From Octopus bimaculoides (taxonomy: Eukaryota), in NCBI RefSeq assembly GCF_001194135.2, contig NC_068983.1, positions 24,916,153 to 24,973,007 on the forward strand: 56,855 nucleotides of DNA, in the 5' to 3' direction. Position numbers and translations under genes: made by a program. The notes beneath the pieces are model-generated. The model worked only from the letters and a program-made list of their open reading frames with translations. It searched no databases and was not told the origin of the DNA. This document shows, one piece after another, positions 403-15,500 of the stretch. Positions within the stretch are counted from its first letter, which is position 1; each line of letters starts with the position of its first letter.

Positions 403-552
403 GTTGTTCAGAAGAACCTACTGTTTGCATTGGGCAGTGCTGTTACAAAAGATTTGATTAATAACACAATCTATAAGAAACACTTCTTGGAGAATTTTGA
501 TTTTGCAACTCTTGAAAATGAGATGAATTGGCATTATAATGAACGAGAACAG
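403..552 (+). CDS. GH10 exon (VVQKNLLFALGSAV...FDFATLENEMNWHYNEREQ), phase 0-0
   Basis: ttttag acceptor ending at 402, donor gtaggt at 553; GH10 FGxAV and ENEMxW motifs. Confidence 0.92.
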
Positions 553-3500
553 GTAGGTTTGCACCACAATTTTATAATTTGTTTTTTCATGTTTGACCTA
601 CATAAACGAGGCAGTAACCAGACAGTTTTTTTTAGTTTCACTTGACTGAATATATGTTCCACAAACGTTTGTAATGTACACACACAAACAATATTATGTA
701 CTGAATTTACAGTGGGTGCTCTTTTGTATCAAAGTAGTAATACTATTAAAGTATTTATACATTTAATACGAGCGATTATATATGATATATAATATATTGT
801 GAAATGATATCAGGAAATTAATATCAGACAAATTCTCCAGAAAGATATATGCATGTCTAGAATAATTATTGGATTAAAAATATAAATATATAAAAAATAT
901 ATGTAAATATGTACTAGTATAAATATATAATAATAAATATGACAGTTTAAAATTAAGTTTATAAGGCATTTTACGATCGTTTCGCAAAAGTATTGTCTCC
1001 ATAATGGAATTCTATATTGATAAACATTTATCGACAATACTTCTGCTCCTCAGAGATATGAAATGTGAAGTTTGTATAACTTATCGAATGGTAGTATTTT
1101 TTAAAAATATGAAGTAATATGGGAAAATGGTGTTTGTTTGTTCCCCATATTACTTTATGTTTAAAAAAAAAAAAAAGCTACCATTCGATAAATCATATAA
1201 AATTCACATTTTATATCTCTGAGGATCAGATGTATTGTCTATAAATGTTTATCAATATAGGATTCCATTACAGAGACAATGCTTTTGCGAAACGATCGTA
1301 AGATGCTTTAAAAACTTAATTTTAAACTATTAAATTTTAAACTGTCATCTTTATTATTATATATTTATACTTGTACATATTTACATATATTTTTATGTAT
1401 ATTTATATTTCTAATACAATAATTTCTCTCTCTCTCTCTCTCTNNNNNNNNNNNNNNNNNNNNNNNNNNNNNNNNNNNNNNNNNNNNNNNNNNNNNNNNN
1501 NNNNNNNNNNNNNNNNNNNNNNNNNNNNNNNNNNNNNNNNNNNNNNNNNNNNNNNNNNNNNNNNNNNNNNNNNNNNNNNNNNNNNNNNNNNNNNNNNNNN
1601 NNNNNNNNNNNNNNNNNNNNNNNNNNNNNNNNNNNNNNNNNNNNNNNNNNNNNNNNNNNNNNNNNNNNNNNNNNNNNNNNNNNNNNNNNNNNNNNNNNNN
1701 NNNNNNNNNNNNNNNNNNNNNNNNNNNNNNNNNNNNNNNNNNNNNNNNNNNNNNNNNNNNNNNNNNNNNNNNNNNNNNNNNNNNNNNNNNNNNNNNNNNN
1801 NNNNNNNNNNNNNNNNNNNNNNNNNNNNNNNNNNNNNNNNNNNNNNNNNNNNNNNNNNNNNNNNNNNNNNNNNNNNNNNNNNNNNNNNNNNNNNNNNNNN
1901 NNNNNNNNNNNNNNNNNNNNNNNNNNNNNNNNNNNNNNNNNNNNNNNNNNNNNNNNNNNNNNNNNNNNNNNNNNNNNNNNNNNNNNNNNNNNNNNNNNNN
2001 NNNNNNNNNNNNNNNNNNNNNNNNNNNNNNNNNNNNNNNNNNNNNNNNNNNNNNNNNNNNNNNNNNNNNNNNNNNNNNNNNNNNNNNNNNNNNNNNNNNN
2101 NNNNNNNNNNNNNNNNNNNNNNNNNNNNNNNNNNNNNNNNNNNNNNNNNNNNNNNNNNNNNNNGTAGAAAGGAGCGGCATGTGTAAGTATATAGTATATG
2201 TAGAACTATATTTAAGGGTATATATATATATATATATATATATATATAATATATAATAATATATAATCACCACGTGGTCTATTTCCTGTCCTCCGCGTGG
2301 TCAATTTCCTGTTTTTCATGCAGTTCGAACTAACTGTTGGTTATCCATATACCAATATCAAACCATGACCTTCCTTGACCAATCATAGCCCACCTTACGG
2401 TAATAACAATCAATTTCTGTCATTCAAATTCAAAATGGCTGACGTCTAGCATGACGCTTGAAGCTCAAGAGTACCAATGAATTTTAATCAAACTGTTTTG
2501 ATCCATATATGTAACTCCCAATAAATTAATTGAGTGCTCTTATTTCGTTTGTCTACTCGTATAAATATATTGGACAAGTGTTTTCTACAATAGCCTCGGG
2601 CCGACCAAAGCCTTGAGAGGGAATTTAGTAGACAGGAACTGACAGAATCCCGTCGTATATATATATACGACGGGATTCGTATATATANNNNNNNNNNNNN
2701 NNNNNNNNNNNNNNNNNNNNNNNNNNNNNNNNNNNNNNNNNNNNNNNNNNNNNNNNNNNNNNNNNNNNNNNNNNNNNNNNNNNNNNNNNNNNNNNNNNNN
2801 NNNNNNNNNNNNNNNNNNNNNNNNNNNNNNNNNNNNNNNNNNNNNNNNNNNNNNNNNNNNNNNNNNNNNNNNNNNNNNNNNNNNNNNNNNNNNNNNNNNN
2901 NNNNNNNNNNNNNNNNNNNNNNNNNNNNNNNNNNNNNNNNNNNNNNNNNNNNNNNNNNNNNNNNNNNNNNNNNNNNNNNNNNNNNNNNNNNNNNNNNNNN
3001 NNNNNNNNNNNNNNNNNNNNNNNNNNNNNNNNNNNNNNNNNNNNNNNNNNNNNNNNNNNNNNNNNNNNNNNNNNNNNNNNNNNNNNNNNNNNNNNNNNNN
3101 NNNNNNNNNNNNNNNNNNNNNNNNNNNNNNNNNNNNNNNNNNNNNNNNNNNNNNNNNNNNNNNNNNNNNNNNNNNNNNNNNNNNNNNNNNNNNNNNNNNN
3201 NNNNNNNNNNNNNNNNNNNNNNNNNNNNNNNNNNNNNNNNNNNNNNNNNNNNNNNNNNNNNNNNNNNNNNNNNNNNNNNNNNNNNNNNNNNNNNNNNNNN
3301 NNNNNNNNNNNNNNNNNNNNNNNNNNNNNNNNNNNNNNNNNNNNNNNNNNNNNNNNNNNNNNNNNNNNNNNNNNNNNNNNNNNNNNNNNNNNNNNNNNNN
3401 NNNNNNNNNNNNNNNNNNNNNNNNNNNNNNNNNNNNNNNNNNNNNNNNNNNNNNNNNNNNNNNNNNNNNNNNNNNNNNNNNNNNNNNNNNNNNNNNNNNN

Positions 3501-12500: not shown

Positions 12501-15500
12501 TGATGATGATGATGATGATGAAAGTTTCAAATTTTGCCAAAGGGTAGCAATTTGGGGGAGGGGATGAATCGATTACATCGACCCCCAGTGTTCAATTGGT
12601 ACTTATTTTATCGACCTTGGCAGAATTTGAATTCAGGATGTAGCGACAAGCTAAATATCGCTAAACATTTCGTCCAGCGTGATAACGGCTCTGCCAGCTC
12701 ACCGCCTTAATAATAATAATGTCATTTATTTTATAATACTATTTTGTCTCTTGTCAAACTGTTCTAAATTCGAATTGATTTAAATCATTGTAGGCACGTC
12801 TGGATGAATTATGGCAGCTGAAAATTCCCATTTGGCTAACGGAAGTCGATATCATTGACAAAATACCCGCATCCAGAGCAGAGAAACTGGAATACGTTCT
12901 GAGAACTGGTTTCAGCCATCCGGGAGTCGAAGGAATAATTCTATGGGGATTTTGGGCGGGAAACCATTGGGCAGGAGAAAGAGCTTCGCTTTGGGACAAG
13001 AATTGGCGTGTGAGTAATCGATTACTTAAATTTCAAATAATAAGCAGAAGCAAATACAGATATTTGCGTACATATCGCATGAATAAGCCCTTTTTGATTT
13101 AACAAACAAAAGAGAATTTGCTAAATACGTGATTGCGTGTAGGCGTTTCACTTTGTCATCGGTTAGAGTTTCTCGCATGATGCAATCTTTCAGCGGACGT
13201 TAAATTTGAACGGCCGATTCACTCTTTTGTAATATCCAAGTAAAAATTATAACACCTATATTTGGAGAACGAAAGATAAAAGGAATAATCTGAAGAATTA
13301 CAGAGGTAATCCTGAACTTAAAAACAACATTTGGGAATAAATCAAAACTTCGTGGTATGAACTACAGTGTAACTTCTCATCTTTCTTTTACCCTGTTTAA
13401 ATCCTTGAGAACAACGGTAACTACAACAAACATAATATCAATGCAAATAATTTCTACCTGCAGACATACATCCAAATTCGCCTTTATGAAATTTAAAAGG
13501 TATGCACTTCTGATGCATTATGATTCTTAACATCAAAGAGCATATGAGCTTGTGAAAATATGGAGAGCTATTTACACTCTTTGACTGTTACCCATCATTT
13601 GTAATTTACAGGTTAATCATTTAGAATCTGTATTTCTGTTTACGCTAAGCATTTTGTCCGGCGTGCTAACGTTTTTGCCAGCTTGCCACCTTAATATGCT
13701 ATAAATAAAGTACTTTTCCGCAATTCAGCGATAGCACTAACTTGTTCTGTTTACGTATAGTATAGTTTTTTTTACAATAAAACTGCATTTTAGTGGATTA
13801 TTATGGATTTATGTCTTTTAAGTTCCCAGGTATATTGATTCTTTCTCTAGATAAAATGGATCAAATGTGCCATGTATGCTAGACGCTGAAAATATTCCAA
13901 AAGAGCCTAAATAGGCCACTTCGATATTATCTTCTATAAACTGAACATACCTGTGGATTTTTTTTAGGGGGGGGGGATGTGCTCAAACATTTGGTGCAGA
14001 ATTTATAACGTATATTAGGCTTTAAATAAGGAAATTGCATTTTTTGTGTGTTTCATGTTTACGATTAACAATTGTATTTAAACGCTATATTTGAACTTCA
14101 GATAAACGATGCAGGGATTCGGTTGCTTTCTTTAAAAGAAGAGTGGAAAACAAAACGCGTGTGGGACGGAGTTAATTCTCATCAGCGTTATCATTTCCGT
14201 GGATATCATGGTAGCTATGTCGTTCGCATTCAGTCTGGCAATGAAACAAAGGAAGCTAAGTTTGATATAGTACCCGGAGATGGGCGGCAAACTGTGAAGA
14301 TAGATTTCTCAGGTAAATCTAAAGTTTCACCTACTCAACCTTTCCTCACCACCCACACAAAAAAACATCGAAGTCAAATTGTCTATTGTAATCTGTGCAA
14401 AGTAGCATTGCTTGTTTATATGGTTTAAGAGTTGCTGGCTCATACCCTCACCAAGTGAAGCCTTTTCTTTTCAAGCCGGTTTACTGCATTCAAAATGTAA
14501 CAGCCTTTGTAAATAGCAATTCATTGGTAATATCTCAAAATTGATTTATGAAAAGAAAAAAAAAGTATTTAAAAGCAGTCATTTAGTTAAGGAGTTCACT
14601 TCGCCACTTTGTGACTTCAGGTTCGGTCCATTTTCGAGGTACCATTGGCAAGTAATTGTTTTTCTGCTGTAACCTTGTAGTTTTGGGTCAACCAACGTTT
14701 TGGGTCAACCAACGTTTTTTGAGCAGATTTTTGGTAGATGGAAACAGTGCAGAAGAAATTTGCACAAATACGTACATACATATTTATGTAAGAAAGAAAA
14801 CAATATCCACACGCAGACACACACACACATATATGTGTGTGTGTAGTGTCTAGGCCTGCATGCTTACGTCTGTTTGAATACAGAGACGAGAACATAATTT
14901 TCTGGAACATTTTTTTTACCATAGATAACGAAAATGATCTCCGTTTTTCATGAAATGACTCCAGTGTTTCGTAAAATGGGCCGTCACTAAACGGTATGTT
15001 TTTGCTAGAAAGTGGGTCATTTTCTGTGAAAATAACATTTTCTTCCTAGAATTAAAACTTGTTTTCTGCAAAACGGGCTGTTATTAATAGTAAATACATT
15101 ATCTGCGTCTTTTATTAAAGGAAGAACATCTGTTTTTTAGTACAATATTTATGTTTCTTTCTCTGTACAGTATCAGGTCTATCTCTCTGAAGAAGTCAGC
15201 AAGCATGGCGGGACTCTATTTTCCCATATATCGAGTTTCCATTTGACTTATCTTGGTGGAATCTCTCACTATGCTCGTCGCTAATGTCTGCTGCATTCTG
15301 AGGAAATAAAGCTAGATGCGAATGCAAATAGTGAACTTGTAACGACATATTACACCCTAATGATTTGTACGAATCAATCACCTTTTCTACAAGTACTTCA
15401 TAGTTGGCTGCTCTGTGCTTCCCAAGTAGACCATTACATGCGTTTCTGAAACTTTGCCATGCATCCAATTCTAATACATTTAAGGTGTTTTCAAAATTAT

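Follow-up and report, generated by a model that had tools for sequence, protein, structure and literature searches.

Octopuses are strict carnivores, which raises the question of what use Octopus bimaculoides has for its sole 'xylanase' gene, the product of which is fused to WSC domains. The gene is found in a stretch of 56,855 nucleotides of contig NC_068983.1 (positions 24,916,153 to 24,973,007 of the forward strand; hereafter the window), where positions 403-38079 of the + strand hold most of it as a single gene. It belongs to GH10, an industrially important family, and the encoded protein consists, in this order, of a putative signal peptide and a CBM4_9 domain, both encoded to the left of the window, a GH10 domain and five WSC domains. 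The family GH10 itself is known, and what is new here is a member with a conserved Asn/His/Glu (N/H/E) pocket at the positions of Lys, Asn and Gln (K/N/Q), and with a WSC array. Judged from these features the protein has probably ceased to be an ordinary xylanase. On balance, and with considerable reserve, we favour the reading of a retaining glycanase that would still be active, would recognise the C2/C3 face of the sugar differently and/or have a shifted pH profile, and would be anchored through its CBM4_9 and five WSC domains. Both the catalytic activity and a substrate or pH profile unlike that of xylanases are what we infer from the evidence set out below.

An altered sugar pocket in a GH10 barrel

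The protein belongs to GH10 and has the (beta/alpha)8 barrel. The Pfam GH10 profile (PF00331) matched the joined exons with 107.5 bits (cut-off 22.1, E=1e-30), and among the 135 solved GH10 sequences that were matched the best was Bacillus XynA (PDB 7d88, E=1.1e-56). An AlphaFold model computed with a 60-sequence alignment reached a predicted local distance difference test (pLDDT) value of 93.6 and a predicted template modelling score (pTM) of 0.90. When this model was compared with the PDB by Foldseek, the top 45 matches, and 49 of the top 50, were GH10 xylanases with template modelling (TM) scores of 0.67-0.83. Sequence membership of GH26 is not seen, the Pfam scan giving GH10 only.

Four motifs that an earlier sequence-only reading of this DNA had placed on the + strand were all found there: ENEMNW at 514-531, WDVNHE at 9232-9249, GLGAEGHF at 10650-10673 and WLTEVD at 12833-12850. 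That reading had equated three substituted residues within them with Lys47, Asn126 and Gln203 (Cex numbering), and the alignment to Bacillus XynA in PDB 7d88 agrees, setting the octopus N, H and E opposite the K of ENEAKW, the second N of WDVNNE and the Q of GVQGHF, respectively. The Lys47 position is Asn (codon AAT, 526-528), the Asn126 position is His (CAC, 9244-9246) and the Gln203 position is Glu (GAG, 10662-10664). Each of these codons is a single nucleotide away from an ancestral Lys, Asn or Gln codon. In place of the 'NE' motif of clan GH-A, in which Asn directly precedes the acid/base Glu, three Octopus species thus have His followed by Glu.

The remainder of the pocket is largely conserved. 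The acid/base Glu (GAA, 9247-9249) and the nucleophile Glu (GAA, 12842-12844) are invariant among the aligned relatives, and they align with E182 and E280 of XynA, the two residues mutated in the inactive 7d89 (E182A/E280A). Also kept are the His of RGH, the Asn of NDY, the His of QxH, the Asp of TExD and the Trp residues, so that the intactness which the sequence-only reading had ascribed to the catalytic pair, the RGH His, the NDY Asn and the Trp residues is borne out in the alignment with relatives. For the set that lines the −1 and −2 subsites (Glu43, Asn44, Lys47, His80, Trp84, Asn169, Gln203, His205, Trp273 and Trp281), eight of the ten residues are retained.

The substitutions are shared by three Octopus species

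The AAT, CAC and GAG codons are identical in O. bimaculoides, O. sinensis and O. vulgaris. Since three Octopus genomes agree, the substitutions are not sequencing errors, and the possibility that they are assembly errors or private to one genome, which the sequence-only reading had itself raised as a potential refutation, does not hold. For the GH10 module, 332 codons compared with O. sinensis gave a rate of synonymous substitution (dS) of 0.163 and a rate of non-synonymous substitution (dN) of 0.017, i.e. a dN/dS of 0.10, and the intron mismatch between the two species was 7-10%. Exon borders are AG/GT throughout in both of them. With a dN/dS this low the gene is not decaying, as had been proposed from the single sequence, and the identical codons in three species, the conserved splice sites and the absence of a long branch (see below) speak for the same. 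The N/H/E state has since been kept by purifying selection.

The notion that the locus is an artefact, a pseudogene or a bacterial contaminant carries a practically negligible probability. What could prompt it is the state of the assembly, with five gaps, one coding exon missing and two partial RefSeq models, but the same codons recur in three independently assembled species, one of which is gap-free at this locus. All GT-AG sites are moreover kept, 15 exons are without stops or frameshifts, and the gene, rich in introns, clusters among animal GH10s. The shared codons, the intact exons and the dN/dS together refute an artefact or a dying gene.

Rarity of the substituted residues

When 1.84 billion representative proteins were searched with HMMER, 4,622 GH10 matches resulted, and the best 150 of these, together with named cluster mates and six earlier matches, were aligned as a set of 161 non-cephalopod sequences. 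The Asn126 position is Asn in 160/160 of these relatives, and His is found in Octopus only. At the Lys47 position, Lys occurs in 128, Gln in 18 and Thr in 4 of 154 relatives, and Asn in none. The Gln203 position is more permissive, with Gln in 146, Glu in 14 and His in one of 161 relatives; Glu is there mostly in plant and charophyte proteins (Arabidopsis AT4g38650, Selaginella, Adiantum, Urochloa and Closterium). The sequence-only reading had listed all three residues as rewired; the changes Asn>His and Lys>Asn are indeed unusual, but Gln>Glu is not, in view of its occurrence in land plants among others.

None of the aligned non-cephalopod relatives combines two of the three changes. When 185,579 prokaryote genomes and, from the Joint Genome Institute (JGI), 241 million metagenome records were searched with a back-translated WDVNHEM pattern, only non-coding chance matches resulted. 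Columns with a conservation of 80% or more among the relatives number 66, and the octopus retains 59 of them.

These frequencies bear directly on an alternative that we hold to be rather unlikely, namely that the protein is an ordinary endo-beta-1,4-xylanase acting on algal or plant xylan from prey guts or detritus, with changes that are near-neutral or tune the response to pH or salt. His would then replace the Asn bond to O2, water or the new Asn would cover the contacts of Lys, and Glu would work as it does in plants. The conservation of the catalytic pair and of 11/14 conserved active-site columns is in keeping with such an enzyme, as are the variability that already exists at the Lys position and the 14 relatives with Glu for Gln. 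It is harder to reconcile with an Asn that is invariant in the aligned relatives and clan-wide, and that stabilises the transition state by bonding to the 2-OH (PMC8056907), with a Lys that contacts both the −1 and the −2 sugars (PMC5738707), and with the finding that not even two of the three changes occur together in any relative.

Origin of the gene and of its WSC domains

In a neighbour-joining tree, Octopus joins Nematostella inside a clade of 25 members that includes Branchiostoma, a unionid bivalve and several gastropods. All 23 non-octopus members of this animal clade are K/N/Q, which disposes of the idea, also considered in the sequence-only reading, that the variants could be common among animal GH10s. 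When measured against ten non-animal relatives, the octopus has an average p-distance of 0.62 and the other animals have 0.60-0.70, i.e. the octopus protein is not on a long branch. The non-cephalopod matches with the highest scores are metagenomic, which raised the possibility of horizontal transfer or contamination; this was rejected as the primary reading for a gene with at least 16 GT-AG exons that falls within an animal clade. At least 16 introns and the place in that clade point to an old animal gene for a secreted multidomain protein rather than to a recent transfer or contamination.

Among ten other animal GH10 proteins scanned none has a WSC domain; CBM4_9 or PCSK9-C-like domains are found instead. 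The array of five WSC domains looks like an addition of the octopod lineage. The WSC domain is often a binding module within larger enzymes (PMC10282164). The architecture of the protein cuts both ways for an ordinary xylanase, since the combination CBM4_9-GH10 is usual for animal xylanase-like genes and the gain of five WSC domains, seen in 0/10 of the other proteins, is not. A published census counted one GH10 gene in O. bimaculoides and 2-13 in herbivorous molluscs and did not consider the active site (PMC7560691).

Predicted consequences for catalysis and specificity

In GH10, the nucleophile and the Asn contact O2 of the −1 sugar, and the Lys and a His contact O3; in the −2 sugar, the ring oxygen is bound by the same Lys (PMC5738707). 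Stabilisation of the transition state is attributed to the bond from the Asn to the 2-OH, and the Asn-Glu pair is kept throughout clan GH-A (PMC8056907). In docking, the Gln, a conserved −1 residue, forms a bond to xylose (PMC6163442). These reports back the roles that the sequence-only reading had given to the three residues.

On this basis, three single-nucleotide changes in the lineage leading to Octopus altered the −1/−2 sugar pocket. With the change from Lys to Asn, a cationic contact to O3 of the −1 sugar and to the ring oxygen of the −2 sugar would be lost, the change from Asn to His would swap the universal hydrogen-bond donor to O2, beside the acid/base, for an imidazole, and the change from Gln to Glu would bring in a carboxylate. 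Taken together, the changes are predicted to make the pocket more acidic and to place a titratable group next to the acid/base. The retaining machinery, i.e. the acid/base Glu, the nucleophile Glu and the supporting His and Asp, is intact. The CBM4_9 and the WSC array would tether such an enzyme to its polymer. In GH26, a conserved His directly precedes the acid/base Glu (His164-Glu165; PMC6381184), and catalysis is still plausible in the octopus protein because His-Glu is normal in that family of the same clan.

Without the Lys and the Asn that serves the transition state, activity should be strongly lowered, and binding modules, with five WSC domains and a CBM, dominate the protein. One may thus speculate that the GH10 barrel is a pseudoenzyme that serves as an extra glycan-binding module in a lectin-like extracellular protein, for example of matrix, mucus, cuticle or immune recognition. 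We regard this as distinctly unlikely, since both catalytic Glu, the His-Asp network of the nucleophile and the equivalents of Asn169 and Tyr171 are kept under purifying selection when they could drift in a module for binding alone, and since His-Glu is catalytically competent in GH26.

The reading of an active glycanase with altered sugar recognition or pH profile can be taken one step further, to the more tentative proposal, which we consider possible rather than probable, that the last GH10 of octopods was converted to a glycanase for another polymer, with a GH26-like His-Glu, an acidic −1 pocket and a five-WSC anchor. The −1 pocket of a converted enzyme could possibly accept another configuration at C2/C3 or a cationic 2-amino sugar. 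Mannan-type, beta-1,3-linked and chitosan- or chitin-derived polymers, whether supplied by prey or by the chitinous linings of the octopus itself, are possible candidate substrates.

Several observations weigh against the glycanase with altered recognition or pH profile, and against how much can be built on it. A dN/dS obtained from two close species is a measure of constraint on the protein and not on catalysis. The residue states of cephalopods come from three Octopus species, and the changes are dated no further than the genus Octopus. The neighbour-joining tree is a simple one without support values, and the rarity of the changes is limited to what was inspected, which is only the best 150 of the 4,622 GH10 matches. 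The change Gln>Glu is not unusual, being seen in plant GH10 proteins, and His is able in principle to donate a hydrogen bond to O2. The AlphaFold model was made without 19 residues encoded by an exon that is hidden in an assembly gap (exon B, see below), and is weak only there. In the literature we found no biochemical or expression evidence on an octopus GH10. Finally, three of the seven changes at conserved columns are at active-site positions, which is not a significant enrichment (Fisher p = 0.16). The sequence-only reading had spoken of three coordinated changes, and in view of this p value coordinated change is not claimed here.

If the proposed conversion to another polymer is true, no natural GH10 before the octopus protein would have lacked the clan-wide Asn, and the protein would be a clear example of the repurposing of an enzyme after a shift to carnivory. 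Few features of clan GH-A enzymes are as constant as the Asn-Glu pair, and a natural His-Glu GH10 under purifying selection, with both catalytic carboxylates kept, would also be a ready-made experiment on how the 2-OH contact and the charge of the pocket set specificity and pH dependence.

Gene structure and annotation

RefSeq LOC106882323 and the adjacent LOC106882324 are fragments of one O. bimaculoides gene, which was split because assembly gaps broke it. The GT-AG exon map of the window yields the exact translation of XP_014788452.1 (905 amino acids), with the stop codon at 38077-38079. XP_014788451.1 contributes the signal-peptide-like N-terminus, the CBM4_9 domain and exon A (403-552, +), to which its residues 240-289 are 100% identical. 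The hydrophobic N-terminus of this protein looks by eye like a putative signal peptide. The CBM_4_9 profile (PF02018) matched XP_014788451.1 with 29.2 bits (cut-off 25.9), the encoding exons being outside the window, and the match is stronger in the relatives from Branchiostoma, Sinanodonta and Gigantopelta. The linker W-REEANRRIQKYRQRE in front of the barrel is common to bacterial and animal CBM4_9-GH10 proteins. A search of the 9.8 kb upstream of exon A in O. sinensis gave no exon for the CBM4_9 part. The orthologous locus of Argonauta hians (BAAFZT010000052.1, 1-923 of the extract) has one model of 970 amino acids that matches CBM_4_9 (faintly), GH10 and WSC, which supports the reading of CBM4_9-GH10-WSC as a single polypeptide.

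Exon A encodes beta1-beta2 of the GH10 barrel including ENEMNW. It ends in phase 0 (CAG/gtaggt) and its AG/GT borders are kept in O. sinensis. It had been called the first exon, which is wrong given the exons for the signal peptide and CBM4_9 to the left of the window. Exon C (4304-4441, +) starts in phase 2 and encodes RGH (4314-4322), with the equivalent of His80, FW, with that of Trp84, and helix 3; it ends on the AG of a split Arg codon, for which exon D gives the final A. The start of XP_014788452.1, at ATG 4347 within exon C, is artificial. Exon D (9222-9393, +) encodes WDVNHE (9232-9249) and the conserved LNDY, with the equivalents of Asn169 and Tyr171, and exon E (10599-10709, +) encodes GLGAEGHF (10650-10673), in which the equivalent of His205 is at 10668-10670. 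The starts of these two exons, 9222 and 10599, had been given correctly to the nucleotide in the sequence-only reading. Exon F (12794-13009, +) encodes WLTEVD (12833-12850) and WGFWAGNHW (12944-12970), with the equivalents of Trp273 and Trp281.

Exon G (14102-14312, +), which starts in phase 0 and ends in phase 1, encodes the C-terminal extension of the GH10 subfamily (EEWKT...FRGYHGSYVV) and was modelled with high confidence by AlphaFold. Since it ends in phase 1, the reading frame goes on downstream. According to the exon map that matches XP_014788452.1, exon H (18139-18198, +) is a short linker and is followed on the same strand by nine last exons (20881-38079), at 20881-21206, 23010-23232, 24093-24264, 25208-25341, 27516-27791, 31044-31187, 33055-33226, 35490-35611 and 37796-38079. 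The five WSC domains are encoded here, together with two linkers of low complexity; the WSC profile (PF01822) matched XP_014788452.1 in five stretches with 299.9 bits (E=3.7e-91). The sequence-only reading had drawn the module from 403 to 13009, and thereby captured the exons with the motifs and missed a hidden coding exon, exon G and the five WSC domains.

All 15 exons align without gaps to O. sinensis, with 94-99% identity. The O. sinensis protein is 948 amino acids long, and its model begins at the Met within ENEMNW, though the full exon A is present upstream. The annotations of the gene in O. vulgaris and A. hians are likewise split. The annotation can now be corrected by merging LOC106882323 with LOC106882324, and the models of O. 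sinensis, O. vulgaris and Argonauta are recognized as truncated or split.

Assembly gaps and the hidden exon B

Five assembly gaps are flagged at the gene. Four of them are intronic, and the fifth, 2688-3640, conceals a coding exon. Because exon A ends in phase 0 and exon C starts in phase 2, an exon with a length of 2 mod 3 must be missing between them, and a scan of the sequenced part of the A-C intron for splice sites, phase and similarity gave no plausible candidate for it. This exon B is present in both O. sinensis and O. vulgaris, comprises 56 nucleotides and encodes DEETYEDADKIMAILEKHK. It is located at 13022-13077 of the O. sinensis locus L001 (CM016861.1) and at 5583-5639 of the O. 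vulgaris locus L003 (OX597816.1), the latter from an assembly that is gap-free here. Window position 3651 aligns to 13286 of L001, which is 209 nucleotides downstream of exon B, and the alignment of the flanking intron predicts exon B of O. bimaculoides near 3387-3442 on the + strand, within the gap. The joined sequence of exons C and D, RYRD/RVIHW, is collinear and contiguous with O. sinensis and O. vulgaris, and since this junction is contiguous in both species the gaps 4783-4908, 7141-7699 and 8548-8814 are intronic. The gap 1444-2163 is intronic as well.

The intron that follows exon A holds an inverted repeat, which abuts the gap 1444-2163 and whose arms (893-1102 and 1170-1394) are 88-97% complementary and separated by a spacer of 67 nucleotides. 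The last 16 residues of XP_014788451.1 (encoded at window positions 1261-1308) derive from one of the arms, and O. sinensis has a single copy of the repeated sequence. The element at 893-1394 is either a hairpin resembling a miniature inverted-repeat transposable element (MITE) or a fold-back artefact of the assembly.

Other features of the window

Open reading frames resembling reverse transcriptase (with e.g. YADD and MDDLKL) and a C2H2 zinc finger occur at 18741-19064 (+), 42053-45019 (+), 55211-56325 (−) and 54397-54822 (−), and are retroelement debris, intronic and downstream of the gene. More generally, the region of about 41-57 kb of the window and some of the introns contain fragments of reverse transcriptase and low-complexity runs. 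Repeats were further noted at 1-140, 27315-27476, 30300-30470 and 36880-37000, comprising (ACAG)n/(AC)n microsatellites at the left edge of the window and trinucleotide or homopolymer-like runs in introns. Several of these microsatellite and low-complexity runs adjoin assembly gaps.

Comparison with known systems

The best solved relative is Bacillus XynA (PDB 7D88/7D89/9RHV), a GH10 endo-1,4-beta-xylanase with an N-terminal helical region and a C-terminal extension, to which the octopus protein has 35% identity and a Foldseek TM score of 0.83. Common to the two are the subfamily motifs HWDVN.EM.HG and WGFWAG.HW as well as the C-terminal extension, and both catalytic Glu occupy the same positions. 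In contrast to the octopus protein, XynA is bacterial, has the canonical K/N/Q and is without CBM4_9 or WSC domains.

The closest animal counterparts are CBM4_9-GH10 genes of Nematostella (XP_001626084.3), Branchiostoma (XP_019626949.1), Sinanodonta, Gigantopelta, Littorina, Batillaria, Pomacea and Patella. They belong to the same clade of the tree with 32-41% identity, and several of them share the N-terminal CBM4_9 and the linker in front of the barrel. They differ from the octopus gene in that K/N/Q is retained in all 23 and in that WSC was found in 0/10 scanned.

Plant and charophyte GH10 proteins, i.e. the Arabidopsis AT4g38650 group and those of Selaginella, Adiantum, Urochloa and Closterium, have the change Gln>Glu together with an intact catalytic pair, as does the octopus, but they keep Lys47 and Asn126 and are without the WSC array. 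The families of clan GH-A offer a parallel to the second change, since GH26, with its mannanases, lichenases and beta-1,3-xylanases, has His-Glu on the same fold, as in His164-Glu165 of YpenMan26A (PMC6381184). The rest of the octopus pocket is GH10-like, however, and the resemblance in one residue is a lead only.

An engineered counterpart is the 'switching enzyme' SoXyn10A N127S/E128H, in which replacement of the Asn led to loss of the hydrogen bond to the 2-OH and the activity on natural xylan was gone (PMC8056907). In that mutant the acid/base Glu is replaced as well, whereas the octopus protein keeps this Glu and has His, not Ser, in place of the Asn.

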